A stretch of DNA of 64,000 nucleotides, from the NCBI GenBank assembly GCA_965644295.1, contig CBFFRP010000410.1:248001-312000 (forward strand). The letters are read 5' to 3'. How positions within the stretch are numbered: the first letter of the stretch is position 1; the number at the start of each line of letters is the position of its first letter. Shown here in pieces: positions 16,458 through 62,307 of the stretch. The translations under genes and the position numbers were made by a program. Below the pieces are notes generated by a model. The model had not been told where the DNA came from. It made no database searches and was given only the letters and a program-made list of their open reading frames with translations. This stretch comes from Paraphysomonas bandaiensis. Its lineage: Eukaryota; Protista; Chrysophyceae.

Positions 16458-19400
16458 ATGGCTTTACTTCTTCGTGTTGCTGTCTATTTATTAGGGATAG
16501 TGTCAGTCATATCCATAGCTGATACGGAGATATATATACCTCAAGGTAACGACATTCGTATGTTATATATGACCATGTAAATCTAGTTCACAGGCCCTAT
16601 ACTCGAAGAGTTTGATATTGATCTCAACTATGGTGGGTTAGTGTTGTATTTTGATCAGCCAGTGCTTGCCAATACACTGGACATAGACAAGATATCACTA
16701 CAAGCCAATGCATCTATTCAAAGCGACACTGCTTTTCATTTCACTGAGAGAGTGTTTAATAACCTCACAGCGCAGGGAAATACAACTGATGTTTATTTCT
16801 ATATGAGTGCTGATGACTTTGCACGACTGACGGTTCATCCTCAGATTGCCAAGTCTCGAGATCAGACATACATATCGATTGATTTTGGAGCATTTAATTC
16901 GTCTATCGGTGTTCCTTCAGAAGAAATAAATAGTACTCATGCATTGAAAGCATCAGGTTATGTCGAAGACACGTCACAGCCATACGTGAAGCAGTTCGCC
17001 CTTGATATGAATGATGGTATCCTCACTATAGACTTTTCTGAGCCTATGAATGTGTCATCTTTCACTCTTGAAGGTCTTGCTTTACAGCGAGTAAGAAATG
17101 CTCTCTACGATAGTTCTTATGTGCGGCTCATAGAAAGGGCAGGATGTGCGTCTGGAGATGACTATCAGCGACGCATTGTTTGCACGTTGGGTGTTGAAAA
17201 CATGAATGAAATCAAAAAACTTCCGAAACTGTGCACTATGGCTTCGAATACTTATCTTTCTGCATGGAAATCATTTGTTAGTGATCTCTCGGGTTCATCT
17301 GTTGCAATTGAGGGGTTTGAACGGATATTCGGTATGCGTACTGTGAATTTCACCTTAGATACGACTAACCCTACACTTGACTCGTGGGACCTCGATCTGA
17401 ACACCGGGCGCATCACCCTTCATTTTTCAGAGACTATATATATGCCGCTGTTCAACTATAGTGGTGTCATACTATGCAACAACGATACGTTGAATGGAAG
17501 TACTGTAACTATGCGTGTGGACGATCCGCTGGTGACATCATATGCTAGCACTGAGGATGTGGTAATTCAGCTGAATAGCTATCAATTCAACATCATCAAG
17601 TATCACGAAAATATTGCCACAGGAAGTGGGAATGATACATACCTTATCCTCGAGCCCTACCTTGCTGTTGATTATGCTGCCATAGCCAACCGTTATCAAG
17701 GATTGGATGCCTCCGTGTCCAATGCCCGCAGAGTATCGAACCTCACTCTGGACACAATATCTCCTGATCTGGACCATGCAGAAGTGGACATGACTGATAT
17801 GACACTTACTCTTGTATTTACTGAAATTGTAGATATAGCCACCATTTCGATGAGGGAGTTCCAGCTGCAGTCCTCTGCGGAAGTGTACGATGACACTGAG
17901 ACTTATCAGTTTCCGGATGCCAGTGTGCTTGTGACCAGTGAAGATAGTACAACCATTATTTTCTCACTCGAGGAGGTGTTTGCAAACTTAAAAGTGTTAT
18001 CTCGACTTGGAAGGAGAGCTGAGTCAACTTTTGTGGCTTACACCTACCGCTTTATTGATGATCAAAGCGGTAATGACGTAGTGGAGATCCCTACGAAGCG
18101 TGCTCGTCAGGTAACAGTGTTCTACCCAGACATTAACCCACCATCAGTGGTTTCATGGTCAATTGATATGAGCATCGACAGACTAGCGTTATCATTCACT
18201 GAACCCATCGAGGTTAATTCTTTCGATGTTACCCAGTTGATATTACAGAGTAGTGCCACAGCGAATCCTGCGAATTCTTACGTGAAACTAACCGAGTCAT
18301 CTGTTGTCGATGAAAATGTCCTGAACGACGTATATATAGTACTCTCTTATGAAGATGCGAACAGTGTGAAGCGCACGGCTGATTTATGCAAGTCGAACAG
18401 CACGTGTTTTCTTTCCTTTGGGTCTCACTTGGGGTATGATGTGTCTACCTACTCACTGAGCGGGGAAGAGTTCCATAGCCCGATAGATCCCCTAGATTAT
18501 GCACTTCAGCCTTCTTTGTATGTTCCTGACACAAGGCCGCCCATTTTGCTCTCTTTCGAAGTAAACTTAAATTGTGGTCAATTTGTTATGTATTTTTCGG
18601 AACCTGTGAATACGAGAACAATCGATCCTACTGGAATCGTTCTTCACGAGTTTAATGCGACATCATCTTCCAGTTTTTCCACTCTGTCGAGCAAAGCATT
18701 CAGTCAATATACAGAAACAGATTCCGAAGTTATTACGCTGGTCCTCACAAGACCTAAGTTTTATTCAATAAAGAAGCAGGCAATATTCAGTCAAAATTAT
18801 CCCCTCTGGATAACTCTTACCAACAACACTTTCTTTGATAGTGCAGGCAATTACTTAGATGGATCTTTGTCGGGCACTGGTTCAAGCAACAGTGTTTTAC
18901 AAGGAGGAGGAGAGCCGGCTTTCATATCTCCCACGTTATATCGAAACGATGATGATGGCCCTACTATTGTAGCGATGAGTAGGTCTGCTGATGATGATAA
19001 TATGACGATATATTTTAACGATGCAGTCGACGTGAGTTCTTTCGTTCGATCTAAAGTTCGTATAGCCTCTTTTGAAGCCATAAAAACTGTTCCACTCACA
19101 CTGTCTCATGTGTTGTCAGAAAATATTTCAGATTACAAGATAGTGGTATCTTTGGCACCGATGACATCCGTAATTGCTGCAACACCACCAATTAATACCA
19201 ATCAAGAAAACTCCTATGTGTACCTTGAGACCAGCTCAGCCATATGGGATGCTTATAATAACCCGAATTCGGCAATGCCGCCGAATTCAGCTGTCCGTAT
19301 GGGTGGAGCGTTATTATACTTCACATTGGATGTAGATAATGGTATTCTCTCGTTCGAATTGGTTTACCCTATTACCATATCACTCAACGATATCGTACCG

Positions 19401-22400
19401 AGCGATTTCTTGCTGATTAACTCTCAATCAGGTCTGCAATACACTTTCATAAATTTCAAGACTATTGTGAGATCTCCTGACGGATATTGCATTGACGTAT
19501 ATATGTCTGAAAATGATGTTAGCAATATCAAGTCATCGCGAATAGTGTCGTCACGATCTGTCATGAAGCTCCAAGTTGAATCTTCGGCAATCACTGATTC
19601 ACTCGGTCTAGAGCTTAACGCCACCACAGTATTACCATGTGCACAGCTGAAGTCTGATAACATTCGTCCGCAAGTAGTGTCCTTTTCGATTAATATGGGA
19701 ACGGGAATCATGACAATCACTTTTTCTGAGCACATTGTCGTGGCTTCCATTGATCTTACGAAGTTAACTCTTGCGGATGCGGCATCCAATGCGAACAATA
19801 CTCTCACTTTGAAAAATTCCGAGCTATCCTCGATTACTGCGGCGCTATCGACTACCACTACGGTTATGATTAACCTAAGCACTGGTGTCACTCGCCCAAC
19901 TGATCGTGATCGTATTCATCTTTCGGAGGCAATCGCGTTGAGTGCGGACTCAACATATCTTATTGTTGAAGACGGCTTTGTTCACGATGCGTCGAATACC
20001 CCCAATTATGTGGAGCCAATTACTGAAAATGCTGCGCTACACGTTGATACACTGTCACCAGATACGACTCCTCCAAAGTTACTGAATTATGAACTAAATT
20101 TAGCAGAGCGGACGATAACGCTGACATTCAATGAAGCTGTTAACGCATCCACTAACAGGGTGTACCTTTATACCTTACTGGCTAATCCTAGTTATCCTAC
20201 AGTTGACTTGTACACTTTAACTGACTCGTCTCAAACATCGCCGGCTACCCTGGCTTATGAGGCAACATCAGTAATCGTGATTGATCTCTCAGAAGAAGAT
20301 GTTGACAATATTATGCTGCAGTATCCAAACTTATGCACATCACCGAGTAACACGCACTTAGCTTTTCCGACTGGAACTATCAAGGATATTGCCTTTTCGT
20401 CCAACTCTATTGAACGGGTTTTTGAAGTGTTCGCAATGCGGGTTTCCCAATATGTTCCTGATACTACGTTGCCGACCATAATGCATTTCGATGTATCCAT
20501 TGAGTCCAGGGAGATTTCTTTTCTTTTCAACGAAATGATTGACTGTTTTGCGACTGATGTGGATAAAATATCGTTTCAAAGTACAGAATTCATTGGAACT
20601 CTCTCTGAACGTTATACTCTGCAATCCAGCTCCACGAGTCTCATTAACTGTGAATCACATAACTACATCACTCGATCGGTAACTCTTGAAATAGGCCGAG
20701 AGGATATTGTGCGGATCAAAACTTATAACAAGTTACTGAAGTCTGGTGCGGCATCCAACCTTTATTTACAGAGTGGGGCATTTGTTGATGTCACTGGAAA
20801 TGGTATTGCTGCCATACCTGATGGTCACACACTACCCGTAAGAAATTACACCAGTGATAGCACTCGACCAAAGTTATTGGGATATACTGTTAATGAGCAA
20901 AAACATCTACGATTACGTTTCAGCGAACCAATGATGCGTAGGAGCTTTGATGTTACACAAATTTCCTTACATAATTCACGAAGCCCCTCCATTTCGTACC
21001 AGCTTACCCAATCAGCGACATCTATTGTGTTTGTAGACGAAAATCTGTTGACAATAACACTATCCCTGCATACGGATTATGATAACATTGATGGATATAC
21101 TGATATTTTTACAGCACAAAGCACCTGCTATTTGAGTATCACTGATGATTGTGTGAATGATATGGCTACCAATCCTGTGATTGAGATACCTGTTTCTCGT
21201 GCTCTCAATGTTGGACCAGCAGTTGTTGACTGGGACCTGGATTTGAACTCTGGTGAGATATCTGTCTACTTTTCAGAGAGAGTAAGAACCAACTTCACGA
21301 TAAATGGAATTGCCATACAGAACAATCAGACTGATCCTACAGTGGCTGTGACTTTCACAGAAACAAATCAGTTTGTTTCGCCATTGAACAATACCTTTTT
21401 TGATGAAGACACTGCCTTCGTAGTTACGCTATCGAGTGCAGACATTTCCAAGCTCAAGTTGTCTGGGCTACTTAATCCGTCTGGAGAAAATATGTTTTTG
21501 TACTCACCGCCTGGTCTGACAGCTTCACCGGTAACAACCACTGTTGTCCCACGTTTATTGTCGACTGAAACATTCTTTGCTCTTCCAATTGGATCTTATA
21601 CCTCTGATTCTACCGGGCCAGTTGTTCTGTCGGTTGTTCTTGACCTCAATGAAGGATATATCACATTGGTATTTGATGAACCAGTAATGGGCTCGTCATT
21701 AGATGTGACAAAGATCTCCCTACTCTCTAATAGCTATGGGAACTCTATCATGTTGACCTCCAGTGATAACGAAAACTTAATGAACTCATCTATCATCAAA
21801 TTCAATATGAGCACTGCGGATTTAAATGCTGTAAAAACGGCTTACATCGATGGCACACTGGACAAAATTATGTGTCATGTTAGTTTTATAACGGATTTGT
21901 TTGGAAACTATCCATCTGGTGACGATGACTTGGAAGGCCAGAGTTTCATTGTCGATATCACTTCATTTGTGCCTGATTCAACTCCTCCTGAGCTGGTTGG
22001 TTGTACCCTTTTTATGAGCACGAATACGATTGACGTTGCATTTAATGAAATTGTAGATATCTCTTCAATTCAGCCTCACTATATTAGCCTTCACTCTCGT
22101 TATATATTATCTCCTAGCACCGAAAATATTACTCTATCAAACTATTCTATTGTTGAGGGAGACTTGGCCCAGCGGGATAGTAACATCACCATAAACATGG
22201 GATTGCTTCGATATGATGCCTTCCAGGTTCAATCACATTCGTCAATTGGTAAAAACACGTCAACAACTTATATTCATATAAGAAATGCCCGAGACGTGAG
22301 TGGCAACCTCCGTACAGATGAAACATTGGTCCAGTGTGTACGCATTGATAATGATATGTCTTCGCCTGTTTTGGAATCATTCGACTTCAATCCGGATGGG

Positions 22401-25400
22401 TTTGGGGATGTGCAGATATCTCTATACTTTTCTGAGGTCGTTTCGATAATATCATTTGATTGTACAGAGTTTTCGTTTGCGTCCTCAAAGTCCTCGACTC
22501 CGAGTGAAACAGTTACATTGATTCCTTCTGACTGTACCATAATTACAGGTGTCGATTCCCGTTTGATTGAATACACTGTCTCGGCGACGAAGTTCAGCAC
22601 CATTGGGAGTTCTCACAGTAATACGTGGATGTACATTCCCTCTCCTTCTACTACAGCCGATATCTCTGGGAACGTTGTAGGTAGTGTGCTATCGAGTGAA
22701 GCCTTGCCGGTTGGTCCTCAAGTAACAGGAGTTTTACTGGATATGACGATAGGCAGAGTTGATGTAATTTTCTCGAAAGATGTCGATTTATCTGCTGCAT
22801 TCAATAGCTCTGGAATCGGATTTTATTCTTCAGTGTCGTCATTATCCCATTTTTTTAACGGGACATCTAGTCTCAGCGGCTATCTACCTGGTTCAGACTC
22901 TCTGGAATTTATACTTTCGGTTAATATTGGTGTTTCTGATTTAATCAGACTTAAGAGTATAGACGTCCAAGAACATCGAGTATTCTTTTTATTATTGGAA
23001 GATGTATTTTTTGACAGTGATGGAGTGCCAACAGGATCGATTTCAAGTGGAGACAGTTTTGGTATTCAACGATTGACTGAAGATTCTGAATCACCTATTT
23101 TTTATAGTGTTGACATAGACATGTCTTTAAATACTATCACGTTTCAGTTTGATGAGCCCATACGGTTGTCATCGTTCCGTTCTGAAAAATTTGTCCTGCA
23201 GTCTGCACCAGGTACACTGGACAGTGGTTTTATTAAGTATTATGAACTCTCTGGAGGGGTGACTGATCAATATTTGGGTAGTTACTCCGTCACTGTTGTG
23301 TATTACTTAACTGACACAGACTCCGGTAGTATAAAACTCCTTGAAGGAATTGCCGATAATTCGACAACAACGTATTTGTCAGTTGAACACTCTCCACTTG
23401 AAGATATGGCTGGAAATAGTCTGGCCAGCATATTCCCGGAGAATGCCGTTCAGTTTGATCGCTTTGTTGAGGACACACTTGCACCAATTTTACTGTCGTT
23501 TACGCTAGACATGAACGTTGGAGAGCTCGAGCTATCTTTTTCTGAGCCAATAGACGCAAGTTCTGTTTACACTCCAGCAATTGTTTTGCAAAATAGATAT
23601 TCACGAGGGAAAACAATAACACGACATCAGGCCTTAACAACTAATTCATATGTCACCAGCAGTAATGGCTTTGTTATAGCGATTCAGATAGGAGAAATCG
23701 ACATGACATCTATAAAGAATACAGATAATTTGGCCCGCAGGAGGACGTCTAGCTATCTTGCTGCGTCATCCCTCGCTGCCAAAGATTTGGCTGGCAACGC
23801 AATGATTGCTATCATAGATGGTGAGGCATTAAAAGTGGAGACCTTTGTGTTCGACACAACACGCCCCACAATCACTGGAATTGGGCTGGACATGTCCGCG
23901 GAAACATTGACGTTTTATCTCTCGGAATTAGTTGAGACAGCATCAGTGGACATTTCTGCTGTCGAAATCTCGGAATATGCTGATCCTGAACTTGGGTCCT
24001 CGTACCGATTTACATCGGGATCTAATGTCCTGGTAAATAGTGAAATGCGATTTTCATCGTATATAGCGTTCAAGTTGTCTTCTCGCGATGTCAATGGCAT
24101 TAAGTGGAGGAGACCTCTGGGGTTCGACAAGAGCACAACTTATTTTTCTGTTACTCAAAATCTCTGCTACGATACGTTTAAAAACAGACTTCTCGCGGTA
24201 GATGCGTCTGCAGGAAACGCAATGCAGGTGACAAGTTATACAAACGATTTCGATCCTCCCAGCTTGCGACACTACTATCTTGATATGGATTCGTTAACAG
24301 TATATTTGGAGTACAGTGAGTCGATCTTGTTGTCAAGCATTACACTTGAACAGGGAATTTTACAGCGAACTGCAGTCAAGAGATTTGGAAATCATGTTAA
24401 CTTGAGTTACTCAACACCCCGCCTTGGCTCAGATGTTGACAGCAATATTCTGCAGATAGTAATCGATCCTATTACATCACACGAAATGAAATGGAACCGT
24501 ATTGCTGTATCAGCCGAATCAAGTTATTTTACTTGGGGCTCGGAATTTGTCGCCGACGGTTTTGGTAACTATATTGTACCTCTATGGGATGGAAGCGTGT
24601 TAGGTAAGTTGCATGCACTTCATCCTATCATTAGTTCTGATATTAAGTTTCTAGACAATCATCCGATATTGCCTGAAGTTTACAATCCAGATGTAACTTC
24701 TCCAATATTGGTGAAGTGGTTTTTAGATCGCGCTAACCTCAGAATATATATGCAGTTTTCAGAGCCGGTGTCAATGCTGCGTTGCACTGGAATTAGTATA
24801 AGTTCGTCGAGTATAAATATGACGCTCGATACATGCAGCCCTCAGTATACTGAATTCGGTGTGAAGTTAATATTTAACTTGCTGGATGAAAGCGACACAT
24901 GTGACAGATGTCCTGCCGATGACATGTCGTATATTTCAGATGATGGAGAGTCTCTGTTTGCAGAAAATGTTGTTTCTACTTTGGACAATTCACTCGATCA
25001 ATTATATTTATCGATTGAGAGTAATACATTTGTTGACTTGGCTGAAAGCGCAAACTTCTTTGTCGAAGATTTTGACCGTTTAGAAAGCGGACCAGGTTTA
25101 TCATTTATCAATAATTTTGTGTTGGCACTAATTCTATAATTTAGAATGTGGTCCATGTGACGAGGGCACATTCTTGCTTAGTAATTGTACAACTGCGGAG
25201 GATCGAATCTGTGCTACTTGCTCGCAGTGTGGAGTAAGAGAGTGGGTAGTAAGCGAATGTACACTGGAGCATGATACGAGTTGTTTAGGTTTGTGCGCAA
25301 TAGACATTAATATAAAATATGTGCTTAACCATTATTATTACAGCGTGTTCCGATTGCCCATACGGAACGTACATTTCTTCACCTTGTCAGCAACGAGCTG

Positions 25401-30922: not shown

Positions 30923-32536
30923 CTACACAGCCATTTTCATTTTAATGGCAGCGTGCGGCTCATACCCCTCAATAGTGAAGTCGGAGTATTCAAACGAGTC
31001 AATATCTGTAACATTCGGGTTGATGCGTAACTTCGGGAAAGCCCTGGGAGCTCTCTTGATTTGCTCTTTCAGAGCATCCACATGGTTAAGATAGACGTGT
31101 GCATCACCTATACAGTGCACAAAATCTCCAGCCTTGAGCCCACATACTTGTGCGACTAGTCGGGTAAGTAACGAATAGGAGGCAATGTTAAAAGGTACTC
31201 CTAGGCCCATATCTGCCGATCGCTGGTACATCTGGCAGCTTAGTTCTCCGTTGGCGACATAAAATTGACAAAACATGTGGCAAGGAGGGAGAGCCATGAG
31301 CGCTAAGTCCGCAGGATTCCACGCTGTGAGGACGATTCTCCGGTCAGTTGGATTAGTTTTAATCTTCTCGATACACTGCTTGAGCTGATCAACGCCCTTA
31401 CCACTATAGTCAGCGTGCATGTCTTCGTATGTGGCGCCAAAGTGTCTCCACTGGAAACCATACACCGGTCCAAGGTCTCCCTCCTCTCTGTGGGTTAGGC
31501 CAAGGTTATCAAGGAACTCGCGCGATCCGTTACCGTCCCATATATGGATATTCTTCTCAGCGAGCTCATTGGCGTTAGTACGTCCTCTCACAAACCAGAT
31601 AAGTTCTTCTGCCACGCCACGCCAAAACACGCGCTTCGTAGTGAGAAGAGGGAATTGATCATCCCTCAGACTGAAACGCATCTGCATTCCAAATAAAGAA
31701 AGTGTTCCTGTGCCGGTTCTATCACCTCGCTCAACTCCACGAGTGAGAATGTCCTTCAGTGCCTGTAAGTATTGGTTTTCTTCATGGTTACAACACAAGC
31801 TAGGGGATGAGAGGCCTAATTCCATATCATATATTCGCTCAAACTCGGTGAAACGGTACATAAACCCATTCTCCTCACAAGATGATGATCGATAAGCGAG
31901 ACGGTACTTATCTGCGGGAATGGTGGGGAAGAAAGTGTCACAGTCAGGGACAGGAGTTTCGATAGATGTCAAGTAAATGCGTTCGCACATTGGAAGCGCA
32001 ACAGCCTCACGATAGACAGATTCACCGCCAATAACATATACTTTATCAATTGTTGGCACCATATCAGCCGCGGAAAGCATCCTCAAAGCTTCGATCAATG
32101 ATGGAGCGACCATAACAGTGTCAGGAAGAGATAGAGCCCTGCTGTACGTAAGTATAATATGAAGCTACTTCATAACTTACTCTTTGATCTGTGGATTTCT
32201 GCTCAACACAACATTGACTCTGTTCTTTAGGGGTCTGAACTTGACGGGAATGGACTGCAGCAGATGTGAGTGTACAGCTCGAACAGCAATGAACAGCACG
32301 TCACCTCCCATGTTTTGCGCCCCATAATAATAGCATTCTGAGTTGATTGAGCGCATGTTGTTGATACTTGCTTGAAGAATGCTGTATCTCCTGGAATACG
32401 CCACGGTAGACTTCCTCCCTTACCGATAGCTGATACACGTACATAGAAGATCACCGGAGTGTACATATACATACATACACTCACCGTATGTATCTGCAGT
32501 AGCAGCTACTAATATTCCGAATCTCTTCATCTCCAT
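30923..32536 (-). CDS. DHFR-TS: Bifunctional dihydrofolate reductase-thymidylate synthase
   Basis: DHFR motifs [24 protein letters not shown]|[24 protein letters not shown]; TS motifs [46 protein letters not shown] at 32536; three introns. Confidence 0.97.
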
Positions 32537-33725: not shown

Positions 33726-34215
33726 GTACTATACGTACAGTGAAGATCTGTGCGCATTGCTAGTATTAAGTTGTAATAATATGCAGCGATAGCGTTAATT
33801 TCTGTAACTGTTCCAGTAGAGAAATGAATTTATGATCATACTTATTTTGATAGTTTGGGTGCTAAGGTAGGTCGCATTTACAGATACGTTCTGCAGAAGT
33901 TTGTAGAAATGATTACATAGCGTAAAAGTGCTGTAATAGGCTAGAATGAAATTAAATCGTTAGATTGCATTGAGAAATATAACGTTAACGAGCTTGCATG
34001 ATTCCACTGAAGAGGTACATATAAAATACAAATTCTTTGAGTGATGGGTCCTTCGTGTTACCACACAAATACACAAATGTAGTTTCAAGTATACAGCCAA
34101 CACAAGTGGTCAATGAACCGAAGATGCCCCATATTGACAGCGTAACTAATCACTGCGTGCGGCCCTCTAGTGAGTGCTGCGACCACGCACCTCTATCTAT
34201 GTACACATTGCATAG

Positions 34216-35920
34216 TACTGCTGGAAATTGCTCATTTTAAGCTAGATCTCAGAGAGAATATGTCGTTAGACTACTAGATAGATTTATTATTTATTATTTA
34301 TTAATAACATTTACGCGAAGTTGTGATAAACAACACTAACTCATTTTGTTCCATGCATAATCTCCTACATATGTTGACCTCTCGTTACTAAACATATCTT
34401 GAAAGATCGAACTATTTCAGTTTCTCAATATCATCACAGCATTTGTACATCACTATATTTCACTGTATTCTCGTACATTGTCTTCAAGTGACATACTGAA
34501 TATACTAGAATAAGATCCATATTCTTATACTCCCACTCAATGTAGAATGCAGTGAGATAAAGCAACAGTGATCACAATAATCTGATAATGCTATGACTAT
34601 CTAGTCCCATAGGTAAAACAGATGTGAAATCTTTTAAAGATACATATATAACTAGCAGTCAACTAGATATACAGTTATGTGGGATTTTCACCCACTAAAA
34701 CACACCTTTAACCTCTTCGGGGTCGTTTCTTCTGCTGCTCCTCCACTCTGTTAGACACACTTCTCTTAACCCCGGTAATCGTTTTCTCATGACGGCTGAA
34801 GATCTTCGTTGACAATGCCTTTGTAAAAATATCGGCCGCCATATCATCCGTAGATACATGAATCAACTTTGCTGTAGGAAATTTTCCAATAACATGTTCT
34901 CTTATCTAGTGATACTTGATGTCAATATGCTTCGACCTCTTATGATACACTGGATTTTCGGAAAGATACTTTGCACTCTTACTGCTCATAAAGAATGGAG
35001 TCGGCTTCGCTACCAAGAGTCCGAGCTCCTTGAACACCCCCCGAAGCCACACCAGTTCTTGCATAGCCGCATACTCCGCCATATACTCAGATTCCATACT
35101 TGAAGTCGCAACTGTGGTCTGAAGATTGGACTGCAAGGCCAAAATGCCCACACATAGAAACACGATATATCCCGTTGTGGACCTCCGAGTCATCCTATCA
35201 CCAGCCCAGTCTGAGTACTGAATACATGTAAATCAAACTCACTCCCACTGAATCTGATGCCCTCATCAACTGTACCACGTAAATATTTCAACAAATGAAT
35301 AGCTAATCTGCAAGCCGCATATGTTGGAGAAGTGCTAAATCGAGCCAATAACCCCACAGCATAAGCTAGATCAGGTCTAGTATGAATCGCCATATTCAAC
35401 ACCACTCCAATAATTCCTGTATACGGAAATGATGCAACCCATTGCTTCTGCTCCTCCGTCAGCTCACGTTGCTATGCCAAAAAATCCTGAACATCGGTAT
35501 TGTGTGGAGTCTCCTTGTTCTTACTGCTCTTTCCCATAAATGAACTGAATTTCTTAACGATATTCTTGGCATACTCAGATTGATCAAACATATACCAGTT
35601 ATCACCTCGTGTGATCCTGATATTCAAAATCGTTTACACACACCCAGACCGTGCATCTCAAACGTTTCGCAGAACCTACGCTTAACACTTTCTAAGTAGG
35701 TGAGATCAGCAGACGCAATTATGTTATCATCTACATATATCTACAATACATGCAATTTTCCGTTACTCCATCTCATATATAAGCATGTATCCAAAATGCA
35801 AGCAGTAAAATGTAACGACTAAATAAACTTTTCAATATGTCGCGGTGAGGACCTCAATGCCTTGATTAATTGAAAACACCATCCTGCTGGCAATACCTCA
35901 TCAGGTGGTGGTGCCATGTG
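34216..35920 (-). mobile_element. Degenerate Ty1/Copia RT-RNase H fragment with putative PPT and 3' LTR
   Basis: YVDD (~35725), TRPDLAYAVGLL, RRSTTGYI..QTTVATSSMESEY..HKRSKHIDIKYH, with stops and frameshifts. PPT-like TTGAGTGGGAG (34540-34530) is followed by a possible TA...TA LTR at 34529-34216. Confidence 0.88.
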
Positions 35921-36995
35921 TGCCACCGGGTGCAGAATGTATATGGAATGAATATGTAAATATGATAACAAAGTATCAAATGCAAAGATGAATATGTTTA
36001 TTACTATGCCCGGCAGCTGCCTGAGCTCCCTCAAGCACCTATCTGAAGACGCCTCCTCAAAAGTGTTAAAAAGCAAGTCTAGTAACTTATTAATTACAGC
36101 ACATATAACACAAACAACTCATTGAGAACCATTTACATTCTATGAACTATCTAGAAATACAACAGAGAACACAGAACAATATTCTACAAAAGATTCCACA
36201 AGATTTGGTTGATTATGTGGAGATATCCACGTTCTGGAAGATTCACGTAGAGGCCTATAGGAAGAGCCTTAAACCAACTCAACAGCCACAGACCAAAAAT
36301 GCAGTGACTAGCCAATCAGCGTTCAGCAGTAATTCATAATACAGCAGCTGTATACCTATAACTGTATCACTGCGTTCTATTCCATACAGTATACAAAGCA
36401 GTATAATCTGAGTACACCAATCAGATCTCTCCATTGTTCACACAGCAGTATAGGTATATATAGAGAGAGAGTGAAGTGTGTCTTCATTCGAAGATGCAAA
36501 CTGTACACACTTCGTAATACACACAGTCCTCTAGAGCCCCTGTAGCATATTAACCTCACTGGTCTTTAAGGAGTACCTCTCTCAAGATTCGGTGAGGTAC
36601 TCCTGCACACTCCCACTGCTGTATATCTATAACAACAACGTTAGCTCATAAAGGCTGTACTCTGTATTGTGATTATACGTGTATATGGTATACGTATATT
36701 GAGGTATACATATACAGCAGCAGTATATACTGACCGCAACTGTGTGTTCATATCTTTGCATGTTGAGATTGTTTTGTCCATAGTTGGAAAAAGATGGTGC
36801 TTTAGAAACTCTACAGATGTGTATATACAAGTTGGACGTATCTTTTCGAATATTCTACTAGTGGGGCAACACAATCATGCTCCACCACTTAGTCATGTTG
36901 ATGCTGCGTATCTTCTCTCTGTATATTCATATCTATACGATCTCATTATATTATCATACACTCAGAGCATCACAACTACACCACAAGTTACACAC

Positions 36996-39278
36996 ATGGC
37001 AGATGATGTTAGACGAGCTAATGTTCAGGCGAAATGCCGTATGATTATTGAGTGTCTTCAGAAGATACTAACGAGTGAAGATACAGCGGCTGATGTTCGG
37101 CCCCATATCAGTGACGTGATCAACAGATGCGATACGATTTTAACTAACTTAAATCCAACAAAAGTTGCTCTCTATGGCGGCACAGGAGTGGGTAAATCGC
37201 GATTCATCAATCAGTTACTTCAAGAGCCTGTTGTTATAGCGGGTGCACAGTCAAAGTCATCCACTTCAGTGGTGAGTGAGATTGTCTCTCGGTCAGACAT
37301 GAAGACATACAAAGCAACGGTGTATTTCATATCAACCCGAACTATGAAGGAACGCCTTGAATATGTGGCGGAAATGCTGCAGGAGAATCGTGCACTCGAA
37401 GGAAATAGCAGACTCGAAGCTATAATGACTGTGGTAAGGCACTGCTTCAGAAACGACCTTAGCTTTGAGAACCCCACTCCACTAACTCCAGACGAAGAAA
37501 ACCGTGTACTCTTACAGAACATTGGGCGCCAGCCACTAGTGCTTGAGCAAAACTCCTTGGTGGAGTTACGAGAGGCCCTGACGATCTATTCTCATCTACC
37601 TGCAAACAATGCGCCACCCGATCAATGGCAGGCCATGACTGTGGACTTTATTCGCATCGAAGGAAACTTTGAACACCTTCCCAGCAATGTGATTGTGGTG
37701 GATTCTCCGGGTCTCTTTGATGCGGTGGACATGAAGTCCCAGCGAGCCCTTGAGGTTGTGGATTCTTGGCAGCAGATTTGGTTCACGGATCGGACTAGTA
37801 GATTTCTGAAAAAGAGACAAGAACAACAGGCTTTTCGAGAGCTGTGTGCGACAGAATTGCGCATGAAAAAAGTTTCTGTTGTATGCACGTATGCCGATGA
37901 AATGTTGGGCATGGAAGGTGACTGTGGTGACGATCCCCACACACCAGCAGATCTGGATTTCGAAAGGATGGAAATAAATGCCAGAAACCATATCATTGAA
38001 GTCTTGTGTAGGGGCGACGCGGACGATGTTCGTAGAGAAGTGCGCATACCAGTCGGATTTGTATCGAATGCACGACGTAAGGACGATCAATTTGGCATGG
38101 AGTACTGGCGCAATAGGTTGGGAGCGCTTGGAGCAATGCAGGGTGAAACTTTAAATGCTATGGAGGACGCGCTGACTGAAGTCATCGGCATGCTAGAGAC
38201 TCTAGGCTTGCGAAATCCTCCACCTAATTTCCCCCAGGGCAATTTGGATGATCTGATCCGAAATATTCGTGCAGCGATTGATACACTCATGGATAAATAC
38301 GCCAACAGGTTTTCCAATCGTGATCAGGTTTACCGATTGTATAGTAACATCTGTGACACTGGTGATTGGGATGATATTCATGGGAATACTTGGAATTCTG
38401 TTATGGACACCGTCCGCAGAGGAATATTTCAGTCGAAAGGCAGACCGCGTCAATACATTGATGTCAACACTGATATTAGCAGCGCGTGGGTTCGAGCTGA
38501 GGATAGAAATATCCGAAATCTGAGGGAGCAGTTCGCTACATTTAGAAACGAAATTCGCCAACTGGAGAGTCAGTGGCAAGAAAAGCCAGCAGGATTCGCT
38601 AAGAGCCTTCGCATCGATGTTGACCGTTGGCAGAACCGCACAACTGTAGTAATGCGGCATGCGTTCGATGTTGCTACTCTCGCCGATCAGATTCGTACCG
38701 ATTTCACTGATGAGAAAGTATATGGACCAAGAGGAAAGAAAGAGAAATATCCAAAGAAAGGTGAAATTCGTAAACAGGTGACTCGTCTGCTGGATAGGCA
38801 GCGTTTGTATCGCGACAACCTGCTGAGGGAAGTAGACGCATTGCAAGCAGCGATTCTGCGCTACATCCAGCCTGTTCAAGAACTGAATCAAAATACTGTG
38901 ACTATCATCACCGGATTGATCCACACACTTAAACGCCTTCCTGATCAAGATAGGTTCTATCTCAACGAAGATCGTGTGCCTGTTGACTTCGTTTGCCCGC
39001 TGACCATGGAAATAATGAACGATCCTGTGTTGGTTGAGGATGGATGTATATTTGAACGCGATGCTATTAATCGCTATTTTGGTAGTCGCCATGAAGCTCC
39101 CTGTCCGCTTTGCAGAAGGCTTATCCGTATCAATGATATCATGCCTCATGACTTCCTCAGGTACCGCATCACTCTCTGGCGGGAGCAGAATCGCATTGAA
39201 GAGCCCGGTGAGTGGTGGATCGGTTTGTGGGAGGATATTGTTGCTCGTCTTCAAAACAATGCTGAAGACAACGGATAG
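36996..39278 (+). CDS. Dynamin-superfamily (NUGGC/SLIP-GC-like) GTPase fused to a C-terminal U-box E3 ligase, 760 aa, intronless
   Basis: G1 GGTGVGKSRFINQLL, G2 STSVVSEI, G3 VVDSPGLFD, G4-like VCTYAD; NUGGC-type helical motif IHGNTW...RRGIF...IDVN; U-box FVCPLTMEIMNDPVLVEDGCIFERDAI...CPLCRR...PHDFLRYRITLW. The first ATG (MADDVRR) is at 36996; the ORF-track extension to 36669 is non-ATG, promoter-like sequence. Confidence 0.85.
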   Translation: MADDVRRANVQAKCRMIIECLQKILTSEDTAADVRPHISDVINRCDTILTNLNPTKVALYGGTGVGKSRFINQLLQEPVVIAGAQSKSSTSVVSEIVSRSDMKTYKATVYFISTRTMKERLEYVAEMLQENRALEGNSRLEAIMTVVRHCFRNDLSFENPTPLTPDEENRVLLQNIGRQPLVLEQNSLVELREALTIYSHLPANNAPPDQWQAMTVDFIRIEGNFEHLPSNVIVVDSPGLFDAVDMKSQRALEVVDSWQQIWFTDRTSRFLKKRQEQQAFRELCATELRMKKVSVVCTYADEMLGMEGDCGDDPHTPADLDFERMEINARNHIIEVLCRGDADDVRREVRIPVGFVSNARRKDDQFGMEYWRNRLGALGAMQGETLNAMEDALTEVIGMLETLGLRNPPPNFPQGNLDDLIRNIRAAIDTLMDKYANRFSNRDQVYRLYSNICDTGDWDDIHGNTWNSVMDTVRRGIFQSKGRPRQYIDVNTDISSAWVRAEDRNIRNLREQFATFRNEIRQLESQWQEKPAGFAKSLRIDVDRWQNRTTVVMRHAFDVATLADQIRTDFTDEKVYGPRGKKEKYPKKGEIRKQVTRLLDRQRLYRDNLLREVDALQAAILRYIQPVQELNQNTVTIITGLIHTLKRLPDQDRFYLNEDRVPVDFVCPLTMEIMNDPVLVEDGCIFERDAINRYFGSRHEAPCPLCRRLIRINDIMPHDFLRYRITLWREQNRIEEPGEWWIGLWEDIVARLQNNAEDNG

Positions 39279-39481
39279 AGATGTGGTGTAGTTTCGCTGG
39301 GTTAAGATATTGTGATTTCGAACATCTGAAAGTAAAAAAACGAAAATAACTATATAATCTATAATATGCATTTATTTATACTATGGCTATGTATATGTGA
39401 TTGTGGGCTACGTGGGCAAGAACCTACCCTATATATGAAAGGGTCAATTACTTAGTTGCTGATGTGTTTTGCCGTTCTATT

Positions 39482-39735
39482 TGCCCCATATTGACAGCGT
39501 AACTAATCACTGCGTGCGGCCCACTCGTGGGTGCTGCGACCACGCACTTCTATCTATGTACACATTGCATAGTTCCCCACCCGGGTTCTCACTTTATATT
39601 CAGCGCTGAATATCGTGTGGTAATGATGTAGCTAGTTGGGTTCAGTAGGTAGCTAGCAAATAACGTATGGGACTTAATCAAGTATTAGTTAGGTACCCAC
39701 CCGGCTCAACCTAAGTACGCGCTCAGAATGGGGCA
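39482..39735. repeat. Complete 254-bp terminal repeat (LTR-like) with ~25-bp imperfect inverted ends
   Basis: Starts TGCCCCATATTGACAGCGTAACTA; the end reverse-complements to TGCCCCATTCTGAGCGCGTACTTA. A partial direct copy lies at 34125-34216. Confidence 0.85.
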
Positions 39736-40087: not shown

Positions 40088-41582
40088 TTAATTGTTACTC
40101 TTCTGCATATGAACTGACGGACCATACTCAACGTAGTCTTCCCGAGATATCCACATTTGCTGAAAAGATCCACATATTGAAAGTATAGAGCCACCAATCC
40201 AAGCTGCATGATGCTTCTCGATCGGATCTTGTGATCCAATAACCTTTGCCTATAAGTACAGTATTATTATACATATACCCTTTAAAAATAGCGACTAAGC
40301 TAAACTCACCTTGGCGCAACTAGGCGCAACCTTGGAAATATCCTCAGCTAACCTCGTCGCTATACCATCACATAGTGAACCACCACCAACAAGAATAATA
40401 TTATTCAATAGCTCTCTGCGAATATCTACATCACAGTTAGCAACTGCAGTAAACACTAACTCTGGCAGGGGCGCAGCGGCCATAGATATATCACGATTGT
40501 AAATGCTAATCCTTTGCTGAAATTTTTCAAATGTGTGCTCATATGTACTTGAAAAGTAATCACGCTCTACACACTTGCATATTTCCTCCGACGGATATAT
40601 CAACGTGCCATCAGGTAGTTCATAGGGTGGGATATCTGCTACATCACTACTCGACCCAGAAGATTTATCAGAAGAAATAAAAGACATCCAATGCTTCAAG
40701 TCTCGAATTGTGTCTGATGTGTGCATTTGAAGGAACGAATTACTTACGCATGACAGCGTCTGCTTCCCAAAAACAGATGGTGGTTGAAAACTAGACAACT
40801 GTATTTTCTTGTGACCTTTGAGAACCTTATCTTTCACCAGGTCGTCGAAATAGTTTCCCCCTTGATTCGAACAAACCATAGAGCGAGTGAGGGCAAATCC
40901 GTCCACAACAGGTACAACACGAAGGTGACTTGCACCAATATCTACAATTAGACTTGTCTGGCGTGCAAAACAAAATGAACTCAATGCAGCATTGTGGCAA
41001 AAATACGCTGCAGGGAGCTGCATACTCTCGAATAATATTTCAAGCATCTGTAGTAGAAGTAAGTTATCTGAAAAAATTAGAAAGAAAGAAAAAACCTTTT
41101 CTTTTCGTTCATTTGTTGAGAAGTAGTTTTCAGCGAGTAGAAGTGGATACTTAACATCGGAGTTCCCTCGATTAGTTTCACGAATGCCGTGTTTTAATAT
41201 ACTTTCAGTTGCACACCAATCAATGCCTTCAATAGGGATTAGAGTAAGATTATAAATGCAGTGTGACATACTCTCAGGAGTAACAGCTTTCTTAATTTCC
41301 ATTCCCTCTCTACACACTCTCAGAGCAGAGTCTCCAATATAAAAATCATTAGGGCTGGTTTCCTTGTAACCGACATCCTGTATGGACACCTTAACAATAC
41401 TGTTAATATATAGAAAGGTGTGTACCGTTCTCATAACGAGGGAAGGTGTATCGTATCCTGCAGAGCCAAACCTACAGAGACTATTCCCCATATCAACAAC
41501 ATTAGCGCCGACTTCATCTGAATTAAAACAAAATCAGACAATCAGATAATAATAATAATCTTATCGTACCACCACAAAGCAT
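40088..41582 (-). CDS. ARP4: Nuclear actin-related protein 4 (ARP4/ACTL6)
   Basis: MLCG|DEVGANVVDMGNSLCRFGSAGYDTP, YELPDG, CDVDIRRELLNNIILVGG; last exon AAWIGGSILSICGSFQQMWISREDY with stop at 40088-40090. Confidence 0.88.
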
Positions 41583-60622: not shown

Positions 60623-62307
60623 TCAAGGGTTAGAAGTTTTCGGAGGCGAATTAATCAGAGAAGATATTTTCTTGTTTAATTCCGTGAATGCAGTGTGGAA
60701 CTCCATGATATCGCCCTTGCCCCTTCTCACCTGTGTGTGCACGCAACATTTAAAGATTACAAATGCAAAAGAAAACTATAACCTCTAACAAAGATATGGT
60801 CCCTGGATCTGCTAAAACGGCATATATCTGAACCGATATTCCAATCATTCCTTTGGCCGTTAAAAGAGTTGCCTTTGCCTTCATATTACTCGATTGTTGT
60901 GCCGTAACCTCAAATCCCATTTCACGAAGTGCCTCCGTTACACCACTCATCAGCCGATCGGGGCTTGAGTAGCTAGTGAACTGAAACGTTCTCTTGGTTA
61001 CTTTATCAGCCCGTGGTCGAAAAACTCTATCCAATGCGAATCCACCACACTGATTGACCAAGTCAAATGCATTCAAATGTTTCGGAGCCCGTGCTACTTC
61101 TTGCTGGCCATTATCACTGTCGGCACCACTGTCTGCCTCTTCAGCGTCTTCCACCGCGTTTTGTACTCCAGCCTCAATTTCCTTTTCCGTAGGAACTCTG
61201 GGAACTGCACGGCTGCTCTCGTGCCCTCCATCAACAGGAGCACCTGCCCTTCGGCGAGAATCTCTTCCACTTCCCATCACAGGTTTGCTGTCATCAGGTG
61301 GTGTATCCTGATCTTCTTTTGCCGCAGATCTTGCGGCAGCAACTGTGTTGTTAAGCGAAGGCGTCGGATGATAGCTCTTCGGCCCATCATCAAATGTAAC
61401 CCACGGGTGATTTCGCACATCAGTCAGAGTTACTCGTTCCTTTGGGTCAGCAACCAAAATCGAATCCAAAAGCGAACGAACTTCAGCAGAAAACCACGAC
61501 GGATAGGTGAAATCTGCCGCTTGAATCTTCGAAAATAAGGCCACAATGGTCGATTCGTCGAAAGGAAGAAACCCGGCAAGAAGAACATACAGTATAACTC
61601 CAATACTCCATACGTCTGCCTTCTTCCCTTCGTAACCGCGGTCAGCAAGAACCTCTGGGGCCACGTAATTTGGAGTTCCGCAAGTTGTGTGCAATAACTC
61701 TGTACGGGATGCACCATCACCATCAGCATCACCTACATATAACGATGACAGCCCAAAGTCGCTTATCTTAAGGTTTCCTTGCTCATCTAGGAGTAAGTTT
61801 TCTGGTTTCAAATCTCGGTGACATACTCCTAACCCATGACAGTATTCAACTCCTTCAACTAATTGGCGGAAATAAAAGCGAGCCATTTCTTCTGAAAAGC
61901 GGCCTTCGCTGACAATCTTATCGAACAGTTCCCCGCCAGTTACCAACTCCAAGACAATAAATATTTTCGTTCGCGATGCTAAAACTTCTTTCATGCCTAC
62001 AACATACTGATGTCTTACAATCTTCATGATTGATATTTCCTTCTTGATCTGTGGGCCCATATTTTGCTTCTGAATTTTTTCTTTGTCCAGAACCTGCAGA
62101 ACCCTCCAGTAAGAAACGACTGAAGCAGAGCGCACAGAATACCTTAATTGCAACAGGCTCTGAAGTTTCAGTGTTGACTGCATACTTAACCCTTAACGAA
62201 CAGCCATATCAATAAATTAAAATAGACGGAATTAGAGTGACGTACTTTCCGAACGTGCCTTCACCAAGAGTGCGAAACAGCTCGTACTTTCCGACTTTTT
62301 TAACCAT
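60623..62307 (-). CDS. CIPK: CBL-interacting (SnRK3/CIPK-type) Ser/Thr kinase with NAF domain
   Basis: MVKKVGKYELFRTLGEGTFGK, HRDLKPENLL, LHTTCGTPNYVAPEV, NAF motif HLNAFDLVNQCGGFALDRVF; last exon VRRGKGDIMEFH with stop at 60623-60625. Confidence 0.92.

Follow-up and report, generated by a model that had tools for sequence, protein, structure and literature searches.

A dynamin-type GTPase with a C-terminal U-box in Paraphysomonas bandaiensis, from a predicted GTPase–ubiquitin ligase family related to SLIP-GC

We analysed a stretch of 64,000 nt from the chrysophyte Paraphysomonas bandaiensis (assembly GCA_965644295.1, contig CBFFRP010000410.1, positions 248,001–312,000 of the forward strand), referred to here as the window, and observed that one of its genes, at 36996–39278, encodes a dynamin-type GTPase bearing a ubiquitin-ligase (E3) domain of the U-box type at its C-terminus. 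We hold this architecture and the family assignment with high confidence. Taken singly, both parts of the protein are familiar; what appears to be new is their combination and the family in which it occurs. In the literature searched, no description of a fusion between Dynamin_N/NUGGC and a U-box or RING was found, and a 2025 pan-eukaryote survey of the dynamin superfamily does not mention U-box, RING, ubiquitin or NUGGC. Judged from profile comparisons and a tree, the gene is a member of a sister family of SLIP-GC (NUGGC) within the BDLP-type dynamins.

The coding sequence runs from the ATG at 36996 to the TAG at 39278, 760 codons without an internal stop. A longer listed open reading frame (ORF) begins with a GTG at 36669, and the first in-frame ATG in it is the one at 36996. 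The orthologue P0151, which is the nearest full-length relative (765 aa, 65% identity) and lies on a contig of 2.4 kb (run ERR1719487), has its start at the same Met (Met-(Ala)-Asp-Asp-Val-Arg-Arg), with an in-frame TGA 15 nt upstream. Therefore, we took 36996–39278 as the gene. It is intronless, being colinear with P0151 with gaps that total 8 residues, and in this respect an earlier sequence-only reading of the window, which had proposed one intact, intronless ORF for a NUGGC-like GTPase fused to a U-box, was borne out. Family members on longer eukaryotic metagenome contigs are likewise single uninterrupted ORFs, next to typical eukaryotic genes called as fragments (Vps26, RRM, PIP5K, peptidase M16), which argues that intronlessness is a family trait. 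A database look-up returned no exact record of the window protein. Since other ERR1719 runs belong to the Tara Oceans metatranscriptomes (PMC9983209), P0151 is probably derived from mRNA, and the orthologue is likely to be expressed.

Two side observations concern this locus and its orthologue. An antisense ORF of 389 aa (38202-39371, minus strand) overlaps the gene in its 3′ third, lacks a Pfam match and is most likely a by-product of codon bias on the sense strand. The scaffold TARA_SAMEA6029023_METAG-scaffold_9532 (L003:1-7615), which carries a C-terminal fragment of the P0151 gene, is chimeric: up to ∼7040 it holds ∼7 kb of plastid-type genes (SufB, TIC20, rpl19, rpl33, rps18; GC 26–40%), and beyond that point the 3′ end of the nuclear GTPase–U-box orthologue (GC 48%).

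The N-terminal domain was modelled as a dynamin-like GTPase, in agreement with the sequence-only reading. The AlphaFold model, built on a 25-sequence alignment, has a mean pLDDT of 84.3 and a pTM of 0.65, and notable disorder is limited to the flexible linker (residues 651–660) just before the U-box. From the Foldseek search against the PDB, we observed that the top matches were the Campylobacter jejuni dynamin-like protein (DLP) 5owv, Nostoc BDLP (2j69/2j68), SynDLP and IniA (E 4e-12 to 5e-10), followed by mitofusins, Fzo1, Drp1, dynamin and Mx, all with a probability of 1.00 and together spanning E 4e-12 to 1e-6. The family profile gave consistent results against PDB sequences, with 5owv_A at 9e-23, BDLP 2j68 at 7e-16, and U-box and TRIM RING chains at ∼1e-14 to 1e-16.

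The claim of a complete G1–G4 set holds in part. G1, the G2 Thr and G3 are canonical and are conserved across the family (consensus G-x-x-x-x-G-K-S-T-F, T-T-x-V-P-x-E-I and D-T-P-G-L-G-D, respectively). G4, in contrast, reads TYAD instead of T/N-K-x-D. In the relatives, the same column reads TKLD, TKVD, TKAD, TQAD, TNAD, SHAD and worse, with TKxD present in P0001, P0003 and P0019. In Pfam, the window protein alone reached 20.5 bits for Dynamin_N (residues 57–243), under the 27-bit cut-off, and 27.4 bits for MMR_HSR1, whereas its full-length relatives pass Dynamin_N with 38–61 bits. Thus, membership of the dynamin superfamily rests on the family and not on the window sequence alone.

The stalk contains a strongly conserved element. 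In it, the 25-member family alignment (A3) shows no variation at Gly476 and at least 90% conservation of Ala468 and Asp493, and Trp458, Arg474, Phe478, Ser480 and Asn491 do not vary among the closest five sequences (A5). This element aligns with the H-W-A-T-L-R-A / D-L-N motif of SLIP-GC and its bacterial kin, within the region annotated as DUF7605 in bacterial and fungal members.

The C-terminal U-box proposed from the sequence proved to be genuine. It matches Pfam U-box with 47.2 bits (cut-off 21.4, E 2.5e-12) over positions 1–72 of the 73-position profile, and 77 of its residues align with the solved U-box of PUB12 (E 3.5e-10). The landmarks C-P-L, D-P-V, G-x-x-F-E-R and C-P are kept. The Trp-rich tail that follows persists also in members having no E3 domain (P0014, P0023).

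The fusion is not unique to this gene, but belongs to a sizeable family. A word-index search with the single protein found only P0001 (785 aa, 25% identity over 95% of the query, Dynamin_N 44.6 bits), which has a C3HC4 RING at the place of the U-box. This search missed the closest relative, whose cluster representative is a 156-aa fragment, and with the 25-sequence alignment it returned only P-loop look-alikes. An exhaustive HMMER search with a two-sequence profile gave 3660 matches at E<=1e-3, 136 of them at E<=1e-10 and 11 at E<=1e-30. Among the best 150 of the 3660 matches, ∼30 cluster representatives contain the whole GTPase–stalk core; most of these are 740–800 aa long and have an E3 domain at the same place. 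The family order is an N-terminal helix pair, G1, G2, a lobe, G3, a variable G4, the stalk, the E3 domain and the Trp-rich helix. Apart from the orthologue, the full-length relatives are 18–26% identical. The ∼30 representatives all derive from metagenomes or metatranscriptomes of eukaryotes, so that the family is known from environmental protist sequences only; the members that were looked up are from Logan, ENA or JGI assemblies, and no informative name is attached to any of them. Scans of viral contigs, JGI metagenome contigs and prokaryotic genomes (SLIP-GC-clade queries) yielded no related loci.

The E3 domain itself differs in a graded manner between the members. At the eight RING ligand columns the window protein has C,T,D,C,E,A,C,C and P0151 has C,T,D,C,E,A,C,D; according to this ligand table, the window domain is a RING fold without two complete zinc sites, as in U-box E3s. 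All eight ligands are present in P0007 and P0008, and 13 members keep only a C-x-H ... C-x-x-C site, which is a one-zinc, SP-RING-like arrangement. The corresponding positions are Asp682, Cys684, Cys703 and Cys706 in the window protein and Asp, Cys, Cys and Asp in the orthologue. Across members, Pfam returned U-box, zf-Nse and C3HC4 RING matches in varying order. On the alignment columns (A3, window residues 667–706), the family is therefore read as grading from full RINGs through one-zinc forms to zinc-free U-boxes at a single homologous position, which offers a natural view of the transition from RING to U-box.

Other effectors are also found on this core. A C-terminal HECT domain follows the GTPase–stalk core in P0074 (Protostelium nocturnum transcriptome) and P0092 (a JGI metagenome protein), a protein kinase in P0013 (GCA_013566075.1, unannotated; L004:1473-5243), and no effector at all in P0088 and P0105. 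The HECT and kinase forms share the core up to positions ∼577–594 of roughly 596 in the hidden Markov model (HMM), and the HECT forms fall on the SLIP-GC side of the tree described below, on long branches. The occurrence of two unrelated E3 catalytic domains, RING/U-box and HECT, on one scaffold is the strongest in silico argument for a coupling to ubiquitylation.

We compared the family with SLIP-GC by several methods. The GTPase-only matches of the HMMER search include SLIP-GC of Rhinatrema bivittatum (P0072, XP_029452084.1), annotated as a nuclear GTPase, together with fungal Dynamin_N proteins and a Bryobacteraceae 'dynamin family protein'. BLASTP aligned the window protein with SLIP-GC in the G domain only (∼20% identity). 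When the family profile (A3) was aligned by hhalign with a profile of SLIP-GC and its full-length relatives (A4), the probability was 100% and the E-value 1.9e-48 over 523 columns, spanning residues 13–557 of the window protein and 72–666 of SLIP-GC, including the G2–G3 lobe and the stalk motif. The NUGGC-type helical region suggested by the sequence-only reading is thus supported by homology that extends into the stalk, though not its identification as NUGGC. Maximum-likelihood analysis of 55 cores split them, at an SH-aLRT of 99, into the window family (29 rows, which include an N-terminal-extension subgroup and the kinase fusion) and a group of SLIP-GC, fungal and bacterial sequences (26 rows); this tree was obtained by a quick search, is rooted at the midpoint and contains long branches. 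Since the window family forms a separate clade, the gene is SLIP-GC-like and not a NUGGC orthologue. Pfam DUF7605 at E<=1 did not match the window protein, P0151, P0005, P0015 or the amphibian SLIP-GC; bacterial P0162 and fungal P0094 scored 67.8 and 78.2 bits, respectively.

A bacterial full-length homologue of SLIP-GC (773 aa, Dynamin_N plus DUF7605) was found in GCA_029975915.1 (JARKOC010000505.1, L010:2267-16467; also in L011 and L012). Together with genes of unknown function of 199 and 547 aa, it lies inside an Hma anti-phage operon with overlapping gene ends, flanked by HmaA (1711 bits) on one side and HmaB and HmaC (1129 and 1050 bits) on the other. The locus has the appearance of a known defence system that houses a dynamin cassette.

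These relationships bear on a possible nuclear, genome-associated role like the one reported for vertebrate SLIP-GC, in which the C-terminus would modify chromatin targets as a SUMO (or ubiquitin) ligase of the SP-RING type. A homology to SLIP-GC that reaches through the stalk, a basic patch at residues 581–593 and bacterial kin in a DNA-targeting Hma operon would all be consistent with such a role, as would the one-zinc site kept by most family members; in the two scanned U-box-type members having that site, zf-Nse outscores U-box (P0006, 32.3 versus 22.3 bits; P0003, 27.8 versus 24.2), and several other members combine a single zinc site with a Pfam score above the cut-off. The window protein, however, falls at 26.9 bits for zf-Nse against a cut-off of 27, and has Asp at the first ligand position (in place of Cys) and Cys at the His position. 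It matches far better as a U-box (47.2 bits; PUB12 at 3.5e-10 versus NSE2 at 0.41), and the family profile also favours U-box and TRIM RING over NSE2. We therefore consider the nuclear role improbable.

The gene shows signs of constraint. Between the window gene and P0151, the nonsynonymous divergence (dN) is 0.255 and the synonymous divergence (dS) is 0.761, and dN/dS (omega) is 0.34 by NG86 and 0.48 by YN00; it is highest in the stalk (0.43–0.58). GC content at third codon positions (GC3) and codon frequencies match those of the other window genes, and the 64-kb window contains no paralogue. Viral relatives were not found by tblastn, and BFVD returned only generic viral dynamins. The sequence-only reading had offered selection or recent arrival as alternatives. 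The dN/dS, the native codon usage, the conserved stretch in the 3′ untranslated region (3′UTR) and the absence of a viral relative indicate that the gene is maintained by selection and has not arrived recently. A giant-virus origin was rejected on the same BFVD, tblastn and codon-usage results, and recent horizontal transfer on codon usage, the orthologue with its 3′UTR stretch and the lack of viral relatives.

The gene lies close to putative remnants of transposable elements (TEs), in line with the decayed TE sequence mentioned in the sequence-only reading. Frameshifted fragments at 34.7–36.1 kb (minus strand) resemble copia by eye; searches of Pfam and the PDB returned no match that would confirm this label. 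A direct repeat of 92 nt, found only twice in the window and in the same orientation (34125-34216 and 39482-39573, 96% identity), encloses a 5.4-kb segment with the TE-like fragments and the gene. The sequences flanking its two copies do not align with each other. The repeat has no Rfam match and no significant fold (z = 0.86). From this arrangement, with apparent copia pol remnants adjoining the gene, one could suppose that the gene is a non-functional passenger, TE-carried or a decaying copy that is intact by chance. The 760 uninterrupted codons argue against it, as do a dN/dS below 1 relative to an orthologue that keeps the start, the stop and the 3′UTR stretch, the native codon usage, the lack of other copies in the window, and a repeat of only 92 nt with unaligned flanks. 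A passenger is exceedingly improbable in our view, and the TE-passenger idea was rejected because the flanking repeat does not extend and has neither an Rfam match nor a significant fold.

How might such a protein work? On balance, we slightly favour a soluble GTPase of the BDLP/mitofusin/SLIP-GC type, joined by a 10-residue linker to the U-box and the Trp-rich helix, in which GTPase-driven assembly positions the E3. For the predicted coupling of E3 function to the GTPase, taken by itself, we see about an even chance. Nucleotide binding would drive dimerisation of the G domains, or higher-order assembly, on a bound target. As U-box and RING E3s usually act as dimers, such assembly would bring the U-boxes together, and this clustering would activate or localise the transfer of ubiquitin. 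The U-boxes would recruit ubiquitin-loaded E2 and modify either the bound target or their own chain. For target binding, or as a hinge, the likeliest element would be the conserved stalk motif at about residues 456–497. The protein may be a sensor and a tagger in one.

A role in surveillance or conflict (immune-like), and not in core housekeeping, is a prediction that we make tentatively. Several features are conflict-like: the sequences diverge to 18–26% identity, the effector is swapped (RING, U-box, HECT, kinase, none), the distribution is patchy, and a bacterial SLIP-GC homologue resides in the Hma operon. In contrast to the relatives of this gene, the neighbouring DHFR-TS is 60–80% identical across stramenopiles. 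In animals, dynamin-like GTPase assembly (GBP, Mx) and ubiquitin coating (RNF213, TRIM) are carried out by separate proteins. A eukaryotic cell-autonomous immune effector that would unite the two in one protein, with the variants as interchangeable outputs, and that would descend from a prokaryotic defence-associated dynamin lineage, is a more speculative reading which we think unlikely. On this view, the GTPase would assemble on invaders or damaged compartments, which it would recognise through the stalk motif. If an immune-like role applies, protists would have in this family a previously unrecognised class of effectors against viruses or bacteria.

Several points weigh against this picture of a GTPase-switched immune ligase. 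First, the G4 motif lacks its Lys and varies across the clade, which makes guanine specificity, and even hydrolysis, uncertain. Second, RNF112 (ZNF179, neurolastin), the only characterised protein to combine a RING-class E3 with a GTPase of the dynamin superfamily in a single polypeptide, autoubiquitinates regardless of its nucleotide state and of dimerisation (PMC12012479), so that this precedent does not back a nucleotide-switched ligase. Third, neither a membrane paddle nor a transmembrane segment was found by hydropathy in this acidic protein (highest 19-residue Kyte–Doolittle mean 0.97), so the earlier proposal of a membrane sensor lacks a membrane-binding element, and no recognisable ligand-binding domain was found in the protein either. 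Fourth, the dN/dS of 0.3–0.5 reflects constraint and not positive selection. Finally, PADLOC on the window protein gave LeoA at E 0.0079 (13.3 bits) with no domain passing and no significant match to the LeoA or LeoBC models of the Eleos bacterial defence dynamins, and the defence-operon context belongs to the bacterial sister clade and to one locus type only.

The first two of these points, together with the Dynamin_N score under the Pfam cut-off, would also fit a pseudo-GTPase scaffold, in which a G domain without specificity or hydrolysis is a platform for a constitutively active E3. We regard this as quite improbable, as strictly canonical G1, G2 Thr and G3 motifs are conserved family-wide, and the Asp of G4 is kept, where the Tyr could still stack on the base.

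A further alternative is housekeeping in membrane or organelle dynamics or quality control, by a mitofusin/BDLP-like remodeller or an RNF112-like regulator of endosomes or mitochondria, having its own E3 to control turnover or substrates. The closest folds are membrane-remodelling DLPs and mitofusins, the role of RNF112 is developmental and not immune, and the gene is under purifying selection. The missing paddle and transmembrane segment, the extreme divergence with a patchy, environmental-only distribution that is atypical of core organelle machinery, and the swapping of effector domains make this distinctly unlikely. Whichever role the protein has, GTPases of the dynamin superfamily and RING/U-box ligases each have a central part in innate immunity and in organelle control, and the predicted GTPase-coupled ligase adds to them an unnamed protist fusion family with parallel HECT and kinase fusions and a RING-to-U-box series. 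It extends the poorly understood SLIP-GC/NUGGC lineage into protists, some of them marine, and offers a system for asking how GTPase assembly couples to ubiquitylation.

The features of the gene and of its immediate upstream region are collected in Table 1. The window is eukaryotic in its gene content, with DHFR-TS having small introns, an actin-related protein, a NAF-domain CIPK-type kinase, a PA-RING protein and ANAPC2. The DHFR-TS is bifunctional and split, with the DHFR N-terminus in separate frames (32177-32484); its exon is closest to stramenopile sequences, and no named match exceeds 80% identity. By reading of the sequence, the actin-related gene has a further 3′ exon at ∼40090-40250. 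The statement that most neighbours have introns is correct for these two genes and too strong as a whole, since the other neighbours are long single ORFs. Among the latter, an uninterrupted ORF at 16641-25139 (plus strand, 2832 aa) has as its sole Pfam match a weak Big_5 (bacterial Ig-like), and the CIPK-type Ser/Thr kinase, a plant-style calcium-sensor partner with a NAF domain, is a single ORF at 60750-62183 (minus strand).

Table 1. Features of the GTPase–U-box gene and its upstream flank, in window coordinates
Feature	Position	Strand	Basis
Complete single-exon coding sequence, 760 aa + stop, 88 kDa, pI 5.6	36996..39278	+	Translation; colinear with orthologue P0151
Two N-terminal helices before the G domain (residues 1–51)	36996..37148	+	AlphaFold helices 2–26 and 35–51; aligns with the equivalent SLIP-GC segment
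Dynamin-type G domain (residues 52–345)	37149..38030	+	Pfam, family profile against PDB, Foldseek
G1 P-loop GGTGVGKS (residues 61–68)	37176..37199	+	Gly66, Lys67 and Ser68 invariant in the five-sequence alignment A5
G2 Thr90	37263..37265	+	Invariant among the closest five sequences
Helical-rich lobe of ~100 residues between G2 and G3 (residues 112–215)	37329..37640	+	Common to the SLIP-GC clade; model and profile alignment
G3 DSPG (residues 236–239)	37701..37712	+	Canonical
G4-like TYAD (residues 298–301)	37887..37898	+	Thr and Asp kept, Tyr replaces Lys; after model strand 293–298
Helical stalk, BDLP/mitofusin-like (residues 368–647)	38097..38936	+	AlphaFold model, Foldseek
Most conserved element of the stalk (residues 456–497)	38361..38486	+	Alignments A3 and A5
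U-box (residues 661–733)	38976..39194	+	Pfam, PDB PUB12, zinc-ligand table, model pLDDT 78–92
C-terminal Trp-rich helix, W-W-x-x-x-W tail (residues 738–758)	39207..39269	+	Alignment, model
3′UTR stretch, 29 nt, conserved with the orthologue's transcript-like contig	39299..39327	+	Sequence comparison
Five short frameshifted ORF pieces, apparently 5′-truncated, just upstream of the gene	34708-36076	-	Ty1/copia reverse transcriptase/RNase H by eye only

Among known systems, SLIP-GC/NUGGC and its fungal and bacterial relatives share with the window protein a Dynamin_N-type G domain, the G2–G3 lobe, the N-terminal helices, the W..T..A...R.G.F.S...D.N stalk motif and a similar length (∼770–790 aa). 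The differences are that SLIP-GC has no E3, and the window protein has no match to DUF7605. In fold, the bacterial DLPs and the mitofusins (C. jejuni DLP1/2, 5owv; Nostoc BDLP, 2j68/2j69; SynDLP, 7zw6; IniA, 6j72; Mfn1/Fzo1) are the top matches to the G domain and the stalk. Those proteins bind or insert into membranes by paddles or transmembrane segments, of which none is detectable in the window protein, and they contain no E3 domain.

The U-box is most like those of the plant PUB proteins (PUB12, 7xed; 1t1h; 7c96), which are the best matches to residues 661–737 and share C-P-(I/L), D-P-V, G-x-x-(F/Y)-E-R and C-P. In the plant proteins the U-box is N-terminal and is combined with ARM repeats or kinases, whereas here it lies C-terminal to a GTPase. 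RNF112 differs from the window protein in several respects: its RING is at the N-terminus, so that the order is reversed, and is a C3HC4 RING and not a U-box; its G domain is atlastin/GBP-like and not BDLP/SLIP-GC-like; and in animals it is confined to the brain. The listed Foldseek and PDB sequence matches include no chain of atlastin, GBP or RNF112. The fusions in RNF112 and in the window protein are of independent origin.

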